NCBI RefSeq assembly: GCF_001194135.2
Contig: NC_068984.1
Coordinates: 91,339,128-91,403,082 of the forward strand
Reading direction: 5' to 3'
DNA length: 63,955 nt
From: Octopus bimaculoides
Lineage: Eukaryota
A model generated the notes under the pieces. It had not been told where the DNA came from. It did no database searches and saw only the letters and a list, made by a program, of their open reading frames with translations. Shown here one piece after another: positions 27,847 through 63,609 of the stretch (positions are counted from its first letter, which is position 1; every line of letters starts with the position of its first letter). Position numbers and translations under genes: made by a program.

Positions 27847-28005
27847 GGGAGAATTCACAAAAAAACAACAGACGAAGACAGGTGGTGTAGATAACAAATG
27901 GATGTATTAGTATAACGCTTGGGAATAGAGAAAGTCTTTAACGTTTCGAGCCTACGCTCTTCAGCAGAAAGAAACAGAAAGAAACAAGGAGAGAAAAAAA
28001 TGTGT
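27847..28005 (-). mobile_element. Short non-autonomous repeat with a Penelope-type hammerhead-like end; second copy at 63455-63610 (+)
   Basis: The two copies are mutually reverse-complementary over ~150 bp and share ctttctg(c/t)(t/g)gaagagc-loop-gct(c/t)gaaac. Confidence 0.55.
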
Positions 28006-55733: not shown

Positions 55734-55991
55734 AGAGTTATGCAGTAGCAGTATGATAAAGTGATGATTTGTTGCCAACTTAATGTGGCAATCCCAGGAA
55801 AGGGAAGAATGCTACTGCTATTTTAGCCCCAGGAAACACCATTTCTAGTTGTCTATGTGACACAAGCATTTTGTGTCCTTAAGTTTTCAAACAGAGGAGA
55901 TAAGCACTTCCACCCAACAAAGCCAGCATCCAGAGACTAGTTTCAGAGTCATTGTTCTTCATCAGTCTGGAGTAGCTTGGCTTTGCTAGCT
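55734..55991 (-). repeat. Hammerhead-containing tandem repeat (retrozyme-like), copy 1, partial unit
   Basis: Colinear with 57865-58107 and 62930-63089, and contains the intact ribozyme core. Confidence 0.85.
55915..55987 (-). ncRNA. Type I hammerhead ribozyme with minimal palindromic stem III
   Basis: Minus strand reads GCAAAGCCAAGCUAC-UCCAGA-CUGAUGA-AGAACAAUGACUCU-GAAAC-UA-GUC^-UCUGGA-UGCUGGCUUUGU. Stem I is UCCAGA/UCUGGA plus the AAAGCCA/UGGCUUU extension; stem II has only 3 clear bp. Predicted cleavage is between 55935 and 55934. Confidence 0.8.
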
Positions 55992-57747
55992 TGATTCTTT
56001 ATTACAGGCACAAGTTCTAATTACAGAGGGGACATACAAAGACATATGAAGGATCAATGAGAAATGAATAGAATTACAATGCAAATGAGATGGCCATTTC
56101 GCTTCCGCTGCGAGATGAAACCGTGGATTCCTTTTTCTTAAACTTCTACACAACCTCTAGCCTCGCACCGAGGCAAAACCGCGACCTCCCTTTTCGCTTT
56201 TGCCTTAGAATTACACACCTTTCACACAATTGTTCATACAAGATTTACTTCTTATTTTTCCTTTTCTTTTTAAAACTAAAGTTAACCAAATGTATAGTAC
56301 AATATTTTTTTACAAACATTTTGGAAACCTGTTCATTCAACAATTACAAAATTTACTTGTTTTTCCTTTTTTTTCCCATTAAAAGTTCAAACAAATATTT
56401 TCCTCAGTCACAGTCTTTACAAGATTACATCGACTTACCTCTTCTGTCTCTCACAATGCCTTTCACTTTTACAATCTTTTACATTGGGGTGTCCCATCTC
56501 ACTATAATTTTCTTTTTGTTTGTGTTTTACATGTTGTCTCTTTTTGTTTCTGTTTTCCTGCTGTTTTGTGTGTTCTTGTATTTTTGTCTCTAAGTCTGTG
56601 TGTTTGTTTGACAGTAACTTTATGTGTTTTGTCTGTGTGTCTCTGTCTTTATGTTTCCGTAATTCTGGGTTGTCTTGTTTCTGGTCTGAATGACTCTGTA
56701 CTTGTAATTCCTTTGCTGGTACTTTCACTGGTAAATTTTCTCCATTTCTCGTCGTGGGTTGGGTTTCTTCTTCCATTCCTTTAGTCTTTTTCAAGTCCAT
56801 TGTTGTCGGTGACTTTCTTCTCTCTTGTTTCCTGGGTTTTACCTCTGCAAAATTACCATCATATTCTGTTTTCTGCTTCTACTTTTTTTCCCACCACTAT
56901 ATCTTCCTGCACACTCTCTTCCACCATTTCCACTGCTGCTCTAGGGCATTTCCTTCTCATGTGCCCTCTTTCACTACACCCCTAACATTTTGGGGGGGTC
57001 TCCCCTCCAACATTACTCCCAGTTTTTCACCATTTGGTAATTCCAAAGTTTCCGCCATTTCATCGTAATATTTTGGGCTTATCACACAGATTATTTCAAT
57101 ACCATAGCCCCTTCAATTCAATTGTTGTGTTCTACTTATTATGCCAATCCTCAGGTCTTCTCCATTCTTCCTCAGCTCTGAATTAAACATTGTGGATATT
57201 ACCCATTCTGGGTCTATCAACGGTGGGATTCTTCCCACCTTGACCCTGACAATTCTTTTGCCCCAACAGTTCGGCATCAACGTCCATTTCTCTCCACGTA
57301 ACATCATGTTGCCGGATTTTTTCGCCTCCTCTTCTGAAAGGTTACTACTATAGTTCCATATCTTCTTCCTCTTGTAAAAAACATCTCTTCTCCCATGTTC
57401 ACAACCAACATTTCCTCTATCTCTTCCTGCGGCACGTGTTCTATTCTCCCATTTTCATTCGAAAATGTTCTGAATATTATCGTCTTGCTTTCCATTTTTC
57501 TTTTTTCCTCCTCTGGCAGGGTCATTTTTATGTTTGACCCTTTTTTCTTTACATTCTCACAACATTTAGTTATCTTCTCTTCATTCCACTCCATCATCTC
57601 CAGCTTCAGCACACATGGGTCCATGGCATCTCTACCTCCAGCAGCTTCTGCATAACTCTTCATTTCTTCAATTGTTTCACTTCCACCCAAAAATGGCAGC
57701 TTCGCTCAAAAATTTCACTTCAAATTCCTCAAAACAACAACAAAAAG
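55992..57747 (-). mobile_element. ORF1-only (half-L1-like) Tx1/L1-type non-LTR element with TSD
   Basis: Disrupted ORF1 from ~57690 with a CCHC knuckle C*GCSERGHMRRKC (56987-56946) and a basic tail; no EN or RT seen. The 3' end reads cctgtAATAAAgaatca. TSD gcttggctttgctagct (55975-55991) / gcttggcttgccagct (57748-57763). Confidence 0.75.
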
Positions 57748-58136
57748 GCTTGGCTTGCCAGCTGTCAGTGCTAAATCGCTGTTGAAAACTTATAGAATTT
57801 CAAGTGAAGTAAATTCACTGATCTACAAAATTAGAAAGATTGCATTTCTAAATCTCTCAGAGAGAGAGTTATGCAATAGCAGCATGATAAAGTAATGGTT
57901 TGTTACCAACTTAATGTGACAATCCCAGGAAAGGGAAGAATGCTACTGCTATTTAACCCCAAGAAACACTGTTTCTAGTTGGCTACATGACACAAGCATT
58001 CTGTGTCCTTAGGTTTTCAAACAGGGGAGATAAGCACCTCCACTCAGCAAAGCCAGCGTCCAGAGACTAGTTTCAGGGTAGTCTGGAGTAGCTTGGCTTT
58101 GCTAGCTTTCGGTGCTAAATCGCTGTTGAAAACTTA
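57748..58136 (-). repeat. Hammerhead-containing tandem repeat, copy 2 (one full unit plus start of next; ribozyme core deleted)
   Basis: 57748-57790 recurs at 58091-58136 (period 343 bp). The core region reads ccagactaccctgaaactagtc and lacks CUGAUGA and stem II. Confidence 0.85.
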
Positions 58137-58582
58137 AATGTAATATTCATTTGCTTAAAAAGACGAGAACTGCTAATACTGAAAAAATTTGGACAAAAAT
58201 TTTCTTGACAAAATGCTTGCTACTAAATGAACTTCTTTTAGAGATTTTGCAGAATTTGTTTATCTTTTAATATTTATTCAAATTTTTAAGTTGAAAAATG
58301 AAAAGTGCTTGAAGCTGTTCTCTTTGTAAAAATATGGCCTGAAATGACATGTTAATGCTGCAAAAATTATTAAATTAATATTGTCACAGCAGACTCAGAA
58401 ACAAGCAAGCAATGATGGATATACTGAAGTATTCAATGATTTAGCAAATTTGTTAGATACTTTCAGATGTATTAGGAAAGATTTAATTTCTGTGCTTCTT
58501 TTGAAATAAAGTAACTTGAATTATTTTTTCATATTTTGAACGTTTTAGCTTTTCCTAACACTTTCTTTTTTATTCTTTTTTG

Positions 58583-58923
58583 TATGCTTCAATCATTTGA
58601 CTGCACCCATGTTGGAGCACCACCTTTAGTCAAACAAATCGACCCCCGGACTTATTCTTTGTGAACCTAGTATTGTATTTTGCTGAACCACTAAGTTAAG
58701 GTCACATAAGCACACCAACATTGGTTGTCAAGTGATGGTGAGGGAACAGACACAGGCACACAAACATATACATATATACGAGTTTCTTTCAACTTCCGTC
58801 TACCAAATCCACTCACATGGTTTTGGTTGGCCCAAGGCTATAGTAGAAGATACCTGACTAAGTTGTCATGCAGTGGGACTAAACCCAGAACCATGTCGTT
58901 GAGATGCAAGCTTCTTACCACAC
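58583..58923 (-). mobile_element. tRNA-head SINE, near full length
   Basis: Reverse complement of the 58960-59430 copy; the two are head-to-head. Confidence 0.8.
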
Positions 58924-58959
58924 AATTTATCAGTTTAAAAAAAAAAATCTATCAAACTA

Positions 58960-59134
58960 TAGGCGTAGGAGTGGCTGTGTGGTAAGTAGCTTGCTTACGA
59001 ACTGCGTGGTTCCGGGTTCAGTCCCACTGCGTAGCACCTTGGGTAAGTGTCTTCTGCTATAGCCTTGGGCCAACCAAAGCCTTGTGAGTGGATTTGGTAG
59101 ACGGAAACTGAAAGAAGCCCGTCGTATGTATGTG

Positions 59135-59166
<32 letters not shown>

Positions 59167-59204
59167 TACACATATACATAGCCGAACCGCTATATACACA
59201 TACA

Positions 59205-59254
<50 letters not shown>

Positions 59255-59430
59255 NNNNNNNNNNGCTTGACAACCGATGCTGGTGTGTTTACGTCCCCGT
59301 AACTTAGCGGTTCGGCAAAAGAGAACGATACAATAAGTACTAGGCTTACAAAGAGTAAGTCCTAGGGTCGATTTGCTCGACTAAAGGCGGTGCTCCAGCA
59401 TGGCCACAGTCAATTGACTGAAACAAGTAA
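58960..59430 (+). mobile_element. tRNA-head SINE, full length, with internal microsatellite
   Basis: A box tggctgtgtgg (58972-58982), B box ggttcagtcc (59015-59024), CORE-like caccttgggtaagtgtc, internal (TA)/(CA)n, and a tail ending gactgaaacaagtaaa. Confidence 0.85.
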
Positions 59431-60339
59431 ACTAATAGTCATTTGGCAAGACTACTCTTGAAACAAGTCCTCAAAATGAATAACTTCTGTATTGTGCCCT
59501 TTGTTTTTGGATATTGTGTGAAGCAGCTGTTGGCCTGATGTCGATGCTGATGGTGAGTGCCTTAAGATCCAGCCTGCAAATATCTTTATAGCGTTATTGA
59601 TCATTCTTGATATTTATAAAACAAATTTTTGTTTTTAATGAAATGTAACCAGCTTTCATTCAGGGACATGCCCGATCCAACACAGTAATCACTATATGAA
59701 GGGCATAATTGGTTGACGCTTCCGATTTTGCATACATTAATAACTTTTTATCAGGTGAATTTCAATTTATGTCGTAAGTAGTGCATGTAAAAAGTGTCCA
59801 AACCTTTTTATTTTATTTTATTTTATAGTAGGAGCACAAGTTTCTGTCTTCGCTGTTGTATACAAATGGGAGCAGAATTCATAGTTTGTACTCCTTTAAA
59901 TCTTGATACGTTTCATTTAATTTCTTGTAACATGCTCAGTAAGTTTGTTTAATAAGCTAAATTTGGAAACCAATATATTAAACATGTATATAACGATTTC
60001 CTTCTTCGCACAAGATCAGATATTTTGGGAGGGGTTACAACTGAAATGATGGATAATTTTAATAAATTTCGGTTCTGTAATTGAAAGTAATTACGAACTG
60101 CAAACACATTTGTTTTTCTCTCGGCAATGAGTTAAACTGTCGTCCTTCTCAAACTGTATGCATCATCTCTACATTTAATTCCCTTGCTTGTCAGACGGGG
60201 TATATTAGTTAATAGTGCTATTTACAATACATAACGTCATGTGGGGGCGTCAGCAATTAAACTGTTAATATTTCTCCAGATTGTAGTCAAGCAAGGGATT
60301 ATTGTTGTTTTTTCATTTCCACCATGTTGATACTGATTT

Positions 60340-60500
60340 ACGTTCTCCCTCCCCCTAAATTTCCGCTGATATCAGTGTACGTTTCTTTCAGTTCTGAGCA
60401 CTTGATGGCGGTGAGGAGACGATGACATTCCGACTTCCTGCTTTCTTTTCACTCTAGGCCTTCTCTTCGCTTATCTGACTGGTGGGATTCTAGGTCACCG
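60340..60500 (+). promoter_or_regulatory. Candidate gene start: ATGGCG followed by a GTGAG donor in CpG-retaining sequence
   Basis: ATG at 60405, donor at 60411, and polypyrimidine-AG acceptors ending 60391 and 60457; elevated CpG across ~59.5-61.4 kb. Confidence 0.3.
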
Positions 60501-61974
60501 TGAATTTCTGTTTGCTATTTATAAATACACTTCAGCCTTTCTTTCTTTTTCTTAAATGTTAGCAGTGGACTGTAACAGTAGTATCTGTTAAGATATACGT
60601 GTTGCATAGAGTTGTTGGTTACTGTTAATTGATTTTTTATTTTTCTCCTTTCTGTGTTCTTTTTAGTCTTTTACTTCAGTAGAACATCTACTGAATTGTT
60701 CAAAACAGACTATAACATGTTGAGGCAAGGAGTTCTCTGGCACTCCTTTTCCTCACAGATGTTATTGCTAATAATAACGTTTGTATGTTAGGTCATTAAA
60801 TGCAACTGATATTTAGTGAATGAGAATTTGAACAAGCCTCGCTATGAACTCACGTTGTTAAAGAATTTATTGTTCAAGGATCCATTACAAGTTTCCACTT
60901 GTTTTGGTTTCACCGTGCCTCCTCTTTTTGTTAACATAAATGTTATAAACTTCACATTGTCACAGTAAATTTATTCACATAAGCGAAGTACACAGTAGTT
61001 GATCTTGTATGCTATATATATTTCAGTACTCTCACCGTAATGTGAATCGATTTTGTAAGCAAATATAATTCAATGCCTTACTATACGCAGACTTCAGCTA
61101 AAAATTACCTACTTTCTTGTCGTTTGTTTTATTGTAGGTTATATTTTGTTTGTTTTCCGTTTCTAAGAAACGGAACACCTGTCCCTCGAATGCCTATATC
61201 TCATGGGAAATTAACAGTACAGAACTTGGAGTCGGGTAGATGTAAAAAAATCGAAATTTTGTAGTTTAAGCGACAACATAGAGAAGTTTCTTCGTCGGCG
61301 GAGTACTTTATTAACTAAGTACAACTTGTTACATGTTCGAGCTATAATCGAGTACAACATGATACATTGTTAGTCGGCGGCCAAAGCCCGCACCACAACC
61401 AGCCTGACTTGGTGAGGAGAGTTCTTTATTCCTTTGACAATATGCAGTTTGCAAAGAAAATATCCGATTGACTCTGGCCGTAGCAAGACACCCATTTCTG
61501 TTCCTCTATCATACTTTAGCTTCTCAACTGGTATACAACTACCTCCCTCAATACCATGCCCTATTTAGTCGAGAGGTCTTGTCTTGCTGGTTACTTGATG
61601 ACCTCACTAGTAATGGTGTGAAGAAAAAAGAACTCAGTACTCTAAAGTGGTTCTATCAGGAAAAGCATCCAGCTATAGAAACCATGCCAAAACAAGCATT
61701 AGAGCTTGATGCAGTCTTTTGATCCTGTTGAACCACCCAACCTATGCCATCATGAAAGACAGATGTCACACTCCGGTCATGTTGGTAGATGAAAATTAAA
61801 ACAACAAAAGGATTGGAAGTGAGATGTTAAATGCAGGTAAACTGTAATGAGAGGTTTTGCTCTGCAGTAGCTGATATTTCAATCAAAATGAAACAGCAAA
61901 CTGTTATCATAAGTTTTATTTGATCTATATGTGTGTGCATATATACACATACGCGTGTGTGTGTCCTTGTCCTT

Positions 61975-62815
61975 GTTAACCTTTGCTCCTGTCACCGCTT
62001 CGTATCCTCGGAGAGCATCTTCTACACGAGGTAGTTGTGCTTCGTTAGACGTGATGAGGGTGATGTCGTCCGCATAAGCAGAAGTGAACTTAACACATCC
62101 AATCTCATTAGGGTTGCCACCTAACTTCTCCAGCCTCCGTAGCAATGGCTCCAGGGCCAAAACATACAGAATCGGAGACAAGGGACACCCTTGACGAACA
62201 GACTGCTTGATCAAAAATGGCTCCGTTAGGTAACCGTTTATCTGGACAGTGGACTTGATGCCGCTATACATAGCGGAGATCCACCCACGAAAGCCAGGAC
62301 CCAGCCCAGCCGCCTTGAGGACAGCCCCCAGGTATTGGTGGTCTACCCTATCGAATGCTTTACTTTGGTCTAAATGGACCAATGCCCCTCCTTTACCAGC
62401 TATTTTCCCTACCCTATCTAAGGTGTAGCGGAAAAGATGAAGATTGTCTTGGATCAACCTGCCTGGGAAGAAGCTTCCCTACAACAACCGTCAACCTTTT
62501 TACTAACACCTTGGCTGAAATCTTTAACTCTACGTTAAGTAGAGTTATGGGCTAATAGTTGTGAATGCTATCCCCCTTGCTTGGGTCTTTCTGGACTAGC
62601 GTCACTACTCCCCAACTTATAGAGCTGGGAATACTCCCATTCTGCTGCCAGTTTGCATAGACGCCAGCCAGGACATCCCCAAACAAGTCCGGTTTTAAAC
62701 AGTAAAACTCATAGAGCAGACCATCCAGTCCCCGAGACTTTTCCCCACCACACTCAGCCAGCACCTCTCTTACCTCTGCGGGAGTGATCGGCCCTTCACA
62801 GCATCCAGCTTCACT
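61975..62815 (-). mobile_element. Tx1/L1-clade LINE reverse transcriptase fragment, 5'-truncated, 3' end lost
   Basis: CEGPITPAEV..KSRGLDGL..NY*PITLLN..LDQSKAFDRVDH..VRQGCPLSP..AYADDIT..GAKVNKDK, with one stop and one frameshift. Confidence 0.9.
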
Positions 62816-63089
62816 CTTAGCTTGCTAGCTGTCTCTGCTTATTCGCCTTTGTAAACTTATAGAATTTCAAGTGAAATAAATTCACTGATCTACAAAATTA
62901 GAAATGTTGCATTTCTAAATCTCTCAGAGAGATTTATACAGTAGCAGCATGATAAAGTGATTGTTTGTTGCCTAGTGAATGTGGCAGTCCCAAGAAAAGG
63001 AACAATGTTACTGTTATTTAGTCTCAGGAAACATCATTTCCAGTTGGCTATGTGGCACAAGCATTCTGTGTCCTTAAGTTTCGAAACAG
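62816..63089 (-). repeat. Hammerhead-associated tandem repeat, copy 3 (partial, no core)
   Basis: aaacttatagaatttcaagtgaa..tcactgatctacaaaattagaaa..gcattctgtgtcctta is colinear with 57786-58025 and abuts the Tx1 RT fragment. Confidence 0.8.
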
Positions 63090-63609
63090 TACTTCTTGAT
63101 ACACAGTAAACATTTCAGTTGTTTTCGTTACGCAAGCGCCTGCACTATGAGCACCAACAATTTGACCTCTTTGAAAGTCTGAGAGATCTGTCATTTTAAT
63201 GAATTTTAATTACTTTTTTCTGATGATATCTGAAAAGAAACAGCAATTTTAGCAAAGCATATTAAGCAACACTAACAATAAATAAAAAATAACATAAAGA
63301 TAAAGAAGATTTTGATGGTTTTCTTGATATTTCAAAATTATGATGCTGTGATGCTAGGTGTTTCCATTATTTTGTCCAATGCTTGTATATATAGATGTCT
63401 ATACATATATGTATATATATCTGTCTACATATATATCTATATATATAGATCGCTAGCCACTACAGATTCTTTATTTTCTCTCCTTGTTTCCTTCTGTGTT
63501 CCTTTCTGTGGAAGAGCTTAGGCTTGAAACATTAAAGACTTTTTCACTTCCCAAGCGTTAAACTAATATAGCTGTTTGTTGTCTACACCACCTGTTTTTG
63601 TGAATTCTC

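Follow-up and report, generated by a model that had tools for sequence, protein, structure and literature searches.

We analysed a stretch of 63,955 nt from Octopus bimaculoides (the window), and all coordinates below refer to the whole of it, with the repeat and LINE features on the minus strand unless stated. It holds three copies (A, B and C) of a repeat with a unit of 344 bp, and two LINE pieces joined to them. The features are as follows.

55734-55991, minus: repeat copy A; 55734-55973 is the remainder downstream of the insertion (ribozyme and body)
55914-55991, minus: minimal type I hammerhead of copy A, from motif and fold
55974-55991, minus: target-site duplication, 3' copy, AGCTAGCAAAGCCAAGCT; doubles as the distal 5' strand of hammerhead stem I
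55992-57747, minus: ORF1-only LINE element, 1756 bp, from frames and protein homology
57747-57763, minus: target-site duplication, 5' copy, AGCTGGCAAGCCAAGC(C); 3 differences from the 3' copy
57748-58091, minus: repeat copy B, complete (344 bp), upstream of the insertion
58090-58136, minus: unit-to-unit junction, with the unoccupied site 58090-58107 and the final 29 nt of the unit before
58960-59431, plus: tRNA-derived SINE copy holding the assembly gap 59255-59264; outside the LINE/repeat system
61966-62815, minus: reverse transcriptase (RT) fragment of an L1/Tx1-type ORF2, 3' limit about 61966; RVT_1, E 1e-23
62816-63089, minus: repeat copy C, truncated, unit positions about 68-342; ends at the site AGCTAGCAAGCTAAG, where the RT fragment starts

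The repeat, its ribozyme and the insertion site

Copy B is followed by 45 nt from the start of the next unit, which take the array to its end at 58136, while in copy C the repeat sequence stops before the ribozyme part, which is missing. The sequence AGCTAGCAAAGCCAAGCT occurs exactly at 55974-55991 and 58090-58107 (chance expectation 0.03), the latter being the empty site; variants with one indel plus substitutions are found at 57747-57763 and 62816-62830. The ORF1 element is bracketed by a 17/18-nt duplication, and its removal in silico together with one copy of the duplication restored a continuous array of 1.8 units. The four repeat/LINE junctions claimed in the original prediction were all found in place, within 1-2 nt. 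The duplicated sites around the ORF1 element, the empty site with its exact sequence and the shared ribozyme orientation of both window insertions, all on the minus strand, were likewise confirmed.

The assembly gap lies within an internal (AT/AC)n microsatellite of the SINE, from which about 20 nt are absent; the head (58960-59140) and the tail (59265-59431) are collinear with intact copies at two O. vulgaris loci described below (L001 and L002) and with an inverted copy in the window. The gap touches no reading frame and no LINE junction, and is without effect on the LINE/repeat finding. The two LINE pieces flank it on opposite sides, and no inference rests on their adjacency.

In the hammerhead of copy A, a long stem I (55991-55966 paired with 55934-55914) is followed by a core formed by CUGAUGA (55965-55959) and GAAAC (55944-55940, with GAAA at 55944-55941), by helix II (55958-55945) and by a helix III of one A-U pair with the palindromic loop CUAG as cap. 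The predicted cut follows C55935 and is 57 nt past the LINE 3' end. The insertion point lies 8-12 nt upstream of CUGAUGA, within the distal 5' strand of stem I. As the duplication restores this distal arm, a complete ribozyme remains downstream of the insert. Among the window copies, only copy A has an intact core; the ribozyme of copy B is dead, since a 14-nt deletion near 58075 took out CUGAUGA and half of helix II. The hammerhead fold of copy A has a z of -3.1, the minimum-energy fold being a competing structure. Rfam gave no hammerhead call, at the gathering score or at E<=10, even with 111 nt as query. The presence of a hammerhead in the repeat, as originally predicted, was upheld, with its strand corrected to minus. 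Comparison with the L002 copy showed 45/50 identical positions in the ribozyme segment, with differences confined to N7 and helix II/loop 2, against 141/200 in the remainder. In general, the arrays seen are short (1.25-1.9 units) and most ribozymes have decayed. We propose that the repeat is a retrozyme or a Penelope-derived repeat.

The ORF1-only element and the RT fragment

The ORF1 element has a 5' UTR of about 57 nt (57747-57691), an ORF1 (57690-56435) disrupted by two frameshifts and one stop inside the CCHC knuckle, and a 3' UTR (56434-55992) with AATAAA at 56003-55998, 6 nt from the end, and no poly(A) tail. A protein search showed that the Octopus proteins P0121-P0124 are 42-83% identical to this ORF1, with P0121 (257 aa) and P0122 (404 aa) being intact. 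The octopus ORF1 is also homologous (E 9e-10) to that of a full cuttlefish LINE encoding ORF1 (CCHC), an AP endonuclease (Exo_endo_phos), RVT_1 and zf-RVT, which is an L1/Tx1 architecture; this element carries a 17-bp duplication and its 3' end is also AATAAA without a tail. The homology suggests that the octopus element is a derivative of an L1/Tx1-type LINE, the full architecture being seen in the cuttlefish relative only.

The RT fragment corresponds to residues 450-737 of human L1 ORF2p, its best match among solved structures, and carries one frameshift and one stop. The sequences of the two LINE pieces do not overlap. On its 5' side the RT fragment is truncated at the repeat site, and its junction with copy C (62815/62816) is 2 nt short of the position of the ORF1 element/copy B junction. 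At the 3' end it is broken after ...GTTAACAAGGACAAG, followed by a (CA/TA)n microsatellite. This breakpoint is common, within 9 nt, to an O. sinensis locus (L007), where the RT is fused to the repeat body at a microhomology between LINE AAAGGCAAG and repeat AAATAGCAG. The RT copy of L007 reaches at least 200 bp further 5' than the window fragment and lacks the repeat site on that side; the 1-2 kb around a more distant RT piece (L008-L011, 68%) are free of the repeat. The common breakpoint and the fusion to the repeat body indicate that rearranged LINE-plus-repeat pieces were copied as units at least once.

The RT fragment had been taken for an independent insertion at the site. Its 5' junction does lie at the site in a third repeat copy, but given the 3' breakpoint shared with L007 it is not a clean independent event. 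It is possible, if doubtful, that the junction is a rearranged relic, produced by deletion or recombination of a LINE-plus-repeat composite and perhaps unrelated to the ORF1 element family; the whole 3' half is missing, and likewise any downstream duplication, and both the breakpoint microhomology at L007 and the lack of overlap with the ORF1 element fit such an origin. Nevertheless, a random deletion would have had to stop no more than 2 nt from the ORF1 element's 5' junction, target-primed reverse transcription of one template yields copies with a shared 3' limit and different 5' limits, and the orientation relative to the repeat is as expected in the window and in L007.

Probable separate insertions at one position of the repeat

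Further loci were picked by ORF1 protein homology alone, blind to the flanks, which led from two O. vulgaris genes to L001 and L002, both on chromosomes of that species. The 1.75-kb ORF1-only unit is present in both. In L001, the element (9311-11054) is bounded on each side by the 14 bp ACCTCTAGCCGAAC, a perfect duplication, and CTGATGA follows 12 nt downstream. In L002, the 5' junction of the element (9913-11706) is 5 nt off the homologous point; a neighbouring copy of the repeat, inverted and uninterrupted, has kept its ribozyme intact. The repeat copies that hold these two elements are diverged, and the insertion is at the homologous position in each, immediately 5' of CUGAUGA. The site and the orientation are therefore common to the three ORF1 elements sampled (3/3), and one of the two informative RT pieces is also at the site. 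Altogether, the four junction sets are within about 7 nt of one homologous position, the LINE having the orientation of the ribozyme in every case examined, and the duplications measure 14-18 bp across loci. The diverged repeat subfamilies are scattered over chromosomes and their target sequences vary (AGCTAGCAAAGCCAAGCT, ACCTCTAGCCGAAC and ...TAAGCCATGCTACTC), so recognition must be loose, structural or RNA-guided. The original idea of a fixed target in the distal stem I arm is partly supported by the two new copies and by the discordant divergences presented below.

The shared junction could also have been inherited, if one ancient LINE insertion had been multiplied with its flanks, whether in the course of mobilisation of the repeat itself (via circular RNA or Penelope-type machinery) or through segmental duplication. 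In agreement with this, every copy is flanked by repeat on both sides, L001 resembles a single composite unit with about 90 nt of terminal redundancy, and the RT breakpoint is shared with L007. However, the elements of the window and L001 are 83% identical and their flanks 66%, whereas for the window and L002 the values are 65% and 73%. The corresponding Jukes-Cantor flank/element ratios, 2.43 (95% CI 1.97-3.02) and 0.70 (0.57-0.85), differ 3.5-fold with non-overlapping intervals, although gene conversion among repeat copies could distort them; the non-coding 3' UTR alone gave the same ordering. This discordance argues for separate insertions and not for one insertion co-amplified with its flanks. 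In addition, a normal unit-to-unit junction with an empty site is found next to the occupied one in the window array, the duplication varies between loci in length (18 nt, 14 nt) and sequence, that of L001 is perfect despite old flanks, the extra nucleotides at the 5' ends differ as in fresh integrations, and the 5' truncation of the RT piece falls exactly on the site. The repeat arrays start and stop at different unit positions between loci. The loci are not orthologues, because only SINEs are shared outside the repeat. We thus consider inheritance of a single old junction unlikely.

Far less probable is that an ordinary LINE without sequence specificity inserted in an abundant repeat, either randomly or with some loose preference for the region or the structure. 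Resemblance among the target sequences of the three subfamilies is only loose, and the site is within one arm of a long inverted repeat; L1-type endonucleases are known to respond to DNA structure (PMC1950540). Against this stand the four closely placed junction sets in one orientation, two of them from loci chosen blind to flanks. Finally, that the repeat is the element's own UTR monomer or terminal repeat, a reading the original prediction had named as its own possible refutation, is very improbable: direct-orientation repeat does occur on both element sides at all three loci, but repeat without element is found at the 58090-58107 junction, in copy C and in the inverted copy of L002, the flank overlap of only 14-18 nt fits a target-site duplication and not a full terminal repeat, and the histories of element and repeat are discordant.

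Proposed integration and comparison with known systems

On the basis of a very small sample, three ORF1 elements and one informative RT junction, we propose, with a probability of roughly two in three, that an L1/Tx1-type LINE lineage in octopus genomes integrates at one fixed position of the ~344-bp hammerhead-bearing repeat. The lineage would be present mainly as the 1.75-kb non-autonomous derivative with ORF1 and two UTRs only. Integration would take place by target-primed reverse transcription, with a bottom-strand nick just 5' of AGCTAGC... and a top-strand nick 14-18 nt further on, both probably made by an autonomous partner through its AP-type endonuclease. A relic of such a partner may survive in the RT fragment; among the sampled loci, no full-length autonomous copy with endonuclease was recovered from octopus. 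A promoter would hardly fit in a 5' UTR of only 57-88 nt, so the element may rely on transcription from the repeat, and the ribozyme might then process the LINE transcript.

Systems to be compared are R2 and other LINEs that are transcribed together with their target and then freed by a self-cleaving ribozyme, which in R2 is HDV-like and situated at the 5' end (cited in PMC4494074). R2 and the proposed octopus element are site-specific LINEs with a very short 5' UTR, a transcribed multicopy target and a self-cleaving ribozyme near the element boundary. In R2, however, the ribozyme is the LINE's own and cuts its 5' end, whereas the octopus ribozyme belongs to the target and its predicted cut lies 57 nt past the LINE 3' end. 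As for the loss of ORF2, the mammalian HAL1 (half-L1) kept ORF1 and the ends and became a multi-copy family of its own. The octopus derivative similarly occurs in three copies of one architecture, with intact ORF1s among its relatives, but it belongs to another LINE lineage and host, and is site-specific.

Regarding the target, metazoan non-LTR retrozymes and the terminal repeats of Penelope-like elements carry minimal type I hammerheads (PMC7229834; bioRxiv 10.64898/2026.07.22.740005). The octopus unit is within their published range of 170-400 nt, and its type I hammerhead, with a one-bp helix III under a palindromic tetraloop, is like that of amphibian retrozymes (same sources); its diverged, dispersed subfamilies are a further likeness. 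On the other hand, the octopus arrays are short and their ribozymes mostly decayed. Cephalopods are not mentioned in PMC7229834.

The closest parallel is found in the target-specific LINEs of the Tx1 clade, such as Tx1L, Tx1-Mar, Keno, Kibi/Koshi and Mutsu (Kojima & Fujiwara 2004; Kojima 2015, PMC4494074). Families of this clade target DNA transposons, LTR elements, satellites, snRNA and 5S genes and microsatellites, and their co-transcription with the target has been proposed (PMC4494074). Furthermore, L1-Tx1 is the sole L1-group superfamily listed among the recently active LINEs of O. vulgaris (PMC13282606). The octopus element resembles them in being of an AP-endonuclease lineage with ORF1, in occupying one position and orientation of a multicopy sequence, transposons and satellites included, in having non-autonomous passengers with the same target, and in the dependence on target transcription proposed for them too. 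It differs in that its target is a hammerhead-bearing repeat, which no report in the literature searched describes for Tx1, and in that its lineage is placed by the L1/Tx1-type architecture of a cuttlefish relative. Since Tx1 elements that use other transposons and satellites as targets have been described before (PMC4494074), the novelty lies in the target, not in the principle. The octopus element likely joins the target-specific LINEs, with a target that the papers searched do not describe, and its landing pad would be the ribozyme of another mobile element.

LINE pieces at one position of the repeat

Copies A, B and C of the hammerhead-bearing repeat and the two LINE pieces lie in the window as follows.

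Repeat copies and LINE pieces in the window
55734-55991, minus strand: repeat copy A by alignment to the 344-bp unit, ribozyme core complete
57747-55992, minus strand: ORF1 element, 1756 bp, a 57-nt leader, then an ORF1 in decay, about 418 codons long and containing a CCHC knuckle
57748-58091, continued to 58136 by the first 45 nt of another unit, minus strand: repeat copy B, CUGAUGA missing through a 14-nt deletion
62815 to about 61966, minus strand: RT piece, a reverse-transcriptase fragment matching RVT_1 at 1e-23
62816-63089, minus strand: repeat copy C, truncated, stopping ahead of the ribozyme part

On its two sides the ORF1 element has AGCTAGCAAAGCCAAGCT (55991-55974) and AGCTGGCAAGCCAAGC(C) (57763-57747). 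The first of these, an 18-mer, recurs without an insert at 58107-58090, where it represents an empty site (chance expectation 0.03). Removal of the ORF1 element together with one copy of the duplication leaves a continuous array of 1.8 units. The RT piece begins 2 nt ahead of the equivalent point in copy C (...AGCTAGCAAGCTAAG|AGTGAAGCTGG), and its reading frame, SEAGCCEGPIT, is identifiable from the first codon. Like the ribozyme, both pieces read along the minus strand. The original prediction had placed the two LINE pieces at a homologous repeat position and in the orientation of the ribozyme, with an empty site visible, and the junctions agree with it on each of these points.

The search with the ORF1 protein returned four Octopus proteins, the only protein relatives of the window ORF1. 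Two of them were traced to O. vulgaris chromosomes, giving the loci L001 and L002, which were chosen blind to their flanks. The same ORF1-only unit of 1.75 kb is present at both loci, which indicates a family instead of a deletion peculiar to the window; the three copies contain the LINE ends and ORF1, measure 1744-1794 bp and have the same limits. In L001 perfect 14-bp duplications, ACCTCTAGCCGAAC, enclose the unit (9311-11054); the CTGATGA of a decayed ribozyme follows 12 nt further on, and a diverged subfamily of the repeat flanks the unit on both sides. In L002 the 5' junction is 5 nt off the homologous point (...GCCATGCTACTC|TTGATTTTTG), and the 3' end and the ribozyme are deleted. The sampled ORF1 elements are thus found at one homologous site and in one orientation in 3/3 cases. 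With the RT piece counted by its 5' junction, all four insertions lie no more than about 7 nt from one homologous position and follow the orientation of the ribozyme, in a sample too small to give a frequency. The duplication is 17/18 nt long in the window and a perfect 14 nt in L001. Kojima's criterion for a target-specific LINE refers to more than 20% of flanks (PMC4494074); on this sample the target and the position are the same, the orientation is constant and the duplication length is nearly constant.

Separate integrations or a copied composite

One ratio of flank to element divergence would be expected of a composite unit that evolved as a whole. The two ratios obtained disagree, and the same ordering is given by the non-coding 3' UTR alone.

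Identity of element and flanks between loci, with the Jukes-Cantor flank/element ratio (95% CI)
Window and L001: element 83%, flank 66%, ratio 2.43 (1.97-3.02)
Window and L002: element 65%, flank 73%, ratio 0.70 (0.57-0.85)

Furthermore, the repeat arrays of these three loci begin and end at differing unit positions, and outside the repeat only SINEs are common to them. Untemplated 5' nucleotides and duplication lengths also vary among the insertions. The discordant divergence, the array limits, the empty site, the duplication lengths, the 5' nucleotides and the 5'-truncated RT piece together favour separate integrations into different subfamilies of the repeat, a reading to which we assign a probability of about 0.7. 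That a single insertion was instead multiplied by hitch-hiking together with its flanks appears quite unlikely, the disagreeing ratios and the differing array limits speaking against it; nevertheless, some composite copying took place, as the RT pieces of the window and of the O. sinensis locus L007 have a common 3' breakpoint.

This locus was reached by a HMMER scan with the window RT ORF, which returned the O. sinensis protein XP_036359418.1 (P0126), 78% identical; the same RT segment is present in the DNA with 77% identity. In L007 the RT continues 5' for at least another 200 bp and enters a SINE array, where the repeat site is absent. The LINE homology halts at the same spot in L007 (10407) and in the window (61966), within 9 nt (...GTTAACAAGGACAAG). 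The breakpoint of L007 is fused to the repeat body in the expected orientation, with microhomology between LINE and repeat (AAAGGCAAG versus AAATAGCAG), and that of the window is followed by a (CA/TA)n microsatellite. Both pieces may go back to a single 3'-deleted derivative that underwent further copying, in agreement with a fixed 3' limit and varied 5' limits, the signature of target-primed reverse transcription. Alternatively, the purine-rich spot may be a hot spot of recombination, with which the microhomology at the L007 joint is consistent. Under either reading the RT piece is weaker as independent evidence than had been assumed, and its family tie to the ORF1 element is a candidate one.

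Other observations concern the RT piece and its relatives. Its first codons (62790-62815) contain CTGGATGCTG, a perfect 10-nt match to the 3' strand of stem I, TCTGGATGCTGG (55925-55934), which may be due to chance (about 0.002, a post hoc estimate) or may be a trace of template switching. An internal RT piece, 68% identical, occurs without repeat flanks in loci L008-L011 (P0145), and an apparent RT homology past 61966 in the alignment with P0148 was discarded as a microsatellite artefact. In the independent loci L002 (11700-11710) and L007 (10408-10454) the LINE 3' end, the duplication and the hammerhead core are all gone and the LINE is joined straight to the repeat body at about unit positions 120-150, so that this segment has been lost more than once. 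For annotation, it should be noted that several octopus "genes" are pieces of this LINE/repeat system; XP_036359418.1, named "secreted RxLR effector protein 78-like" (L007 10001-10453), is a LINE RT fragment running into the repeat, i.e. an annotation artefact.

The SINEs of the window are 85-93% identical to those of the O. vulgaris and O. sinensis loci. A tRNA-derived SINE is present twice, head to head, at 58555-58950 (minus) and 58960-59431 (plus). The second of these has the assembly gap (59255-59264) in its microsatellite, with a head and a tail that remain collinear on either side; the gap is without bearing on any junction. In L007 (18600-20453) the tRNA-like head of the same SINE has given rise to a tandem array of more than 20 units with a period of about 87 bp.

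The putative hammerhead and the kind of LINE

In metazoan non-LTR retrozymes the tandem units measure about 170-400 bp, and every unit carries a type I hammerhead. The repeat unit here is 344 bp long and shows one unit-to-unit junction; in the window and the sampled loci the arrays have at most 2 units and most ribozymes are decayed. By motif search, the minus strand of copy A reads AGCUAGCAAAGCCAAGCUACUCCAGA-CUGAUGA-AGAACAAUGACUCU-GAAA-CUAG-UC/UCUGGAUGCUGGCUUUGUUGG, in which the core of a type I hammerhead is complete (CUGANGA ... GAAA ... UH site, with helices I and II). Its stem I is long and takes in the entire 18-nt site (fold z -3.1, with a competing fold at the energy minimum). A lone A-U pair forms helix III, and the palindromic tetraloop CUAG caps it; exactly such a one-pair helix III and palindromic tetraloop are present in the hammerheads of amphibian retrozymes, which act as dimers (PMC7229834). 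A second complete core was found in an inverted repeat copy of L002, whose 50-nt ribozyme segment is 90% identical to that of copy A, against 70% for the remaining unit. The five differences are confined to the free core position N7 and to helix II/loop 2, which is the pattern expected if the putative ribozyme is under constraint. The Rfam hammerhead families gave no match to the window ribozyme, at the gathering score or at E<=10, even with 111-121 nt, probably because the one-pair helix III and the weak helix II cost score, and a metagenome scan with the ribozyme as query gave 0 matches. From the motif and its conservation we call the motif of copy A a putative minimal type I hammerhead.

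Two further motifs were noted. Another octopus repeat carries the core-like CTGAAGAGCGTAGGCTCGAAAC (window 27943-27964, minus, and 63509-63530, plus; L002 13542, plus). It is probably not a ribozyme (fold z +0.3, two surplus nt before GAAA), and its CUGAAGAGC...GAAAC was rejected as a second hammerhead on account of these two extra nt and of the absent fold signal. In the cuttlefish LINE locus L005 a clean minimal hammerhead-like motif, CTGATGA-GCTGTGATACAGC-GAAA-TAGTC (14800-14900, minus), lies about 1.7 kb from the LINE, on the opposite strand, and adjoins a tRNA-like GGGTTTCGATCC.

Regarding the LINE, the ORF1 element has a 3' UTR of 440 nt that terminates ...AATAAAGAATCA, without an A tail. 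Intact ORF1s are found in P0121 and P0122 (the AlphaFold model of the former has a mean pLDDT of 35), and no RT or endonuclease similarity was found inside the three ORF1 elements. Judged by what its copies in the window, L001 and L002 contain, it is a multi-copy ORF1-only, HAL1-like LINE derivative; a metagenome scan with its 3' end gave 0 matches. The RT piece aligns to residues 450-737 of human L1 ORF2p (E 2e-24), its best solved relative, with R2 just behind. The RT protein search yielded relatives of at most 61% identity, mostly from ENA contigs, and a locus obtained from one of them (L004) has nothing in common with the window flanks.

The cuttlefish locus L005 contains a full-length LINE of about 7 kb, a single copy sampled, with the order ORF1(CCHC), Exo_endo_phos, RVT_1 and zf-RVT. 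The RT piece of the window shares 46% identity with the RT of this LINE, and the cuttlefish and octopus ORF1s are homologous (E 9e-10). This LINE is bounded by a perfect 17-bp duplication, TAGCAGCGACAGTACTA (6060-6076 and 13107-13123), and terminates AATAAATAT, a tail-less AATAAA end as in the octopus element. L005 ties the ORF1 element and the RT piece to one kind of LINE, the parts of which are seen separately in octopus. Its architecture (CCHC ORF1, AP endonuclease, RT, C-terminal zinc-binding domain) is, on domain content, that of the L1/Tx1 group, and L1-group LINEs of O. vulgaris have been annotated as L1-Tx1 (PMC13282606). No endonuclease-bearing octopus copy was recovered among the loci sampled, where Exo_endo_phos occurs only in the cuttlefish relative.

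Possible mechanism and meaning

The insertions combine a fixed site, a fixed orientation, a duplication of 14-18 bp and a preserved downstream ribozyme, preserved because the duplication provides the distal arm of stem I. The endonuclease of an autonomous partner would introduce staggered nicks at both ends of the duplicated segment. The leaders, of only 57-88 nt in the window, L001 and L002, suggest that the ORF1 element may be transcribed from the repeat; R2 is known to be transcribed from its target, and Tx1-Mar/SINEU has been proposed to be (PMC4494074).

A more speculative idea, which we consider unlikely, is that the LINE makes use of the hammerhead of the repeat through cleavage of a co-transcript, with a target-derived tail guiding priming, and so borrows the ribozyme of another mobile element for 3'-end formation and homing. 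The intact downstream hammerhead would cut the co-transcript 57 nt beyond the LINE 3' end, and the upstream ribozyme, where one exists, would cut as well. By pairing with the nicked target, the target-derived 3' tail would prime a precise reverse transcription, and the processed RNA might circularise, like retrozyme RNA. Since the duplication keeps the ribozyme and there is almost no 5' UTR, the locus offers a natural test case of whether a foreign self-cleaving RNA can process the transcript of a LINE that relies on it.

It is established that some target-specific Tx1 families insert into DNA transposons, LTR elements and satellites (PMC4494074), and in the literature searched we found no paper connecting Tx1 with hammerheads, retrozymes or Penelope repeats. 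The system is best filed as a target-specific LINE with an ORF1-only passenger family, with a target class unreported in that literature. If true, three layers of parasitism would be superimposed, namely the ORF1-only passenger, its LINE and a non-autonomous derivative of Penelope-like elements, and a ribozyme-bearing retroelement would join the safe-haven targets of site-specific LINEs. No part of the repeat is better conserved than the ribozyme, which would serve as a durable landing pad, as the rRNA sites do for the R elements.
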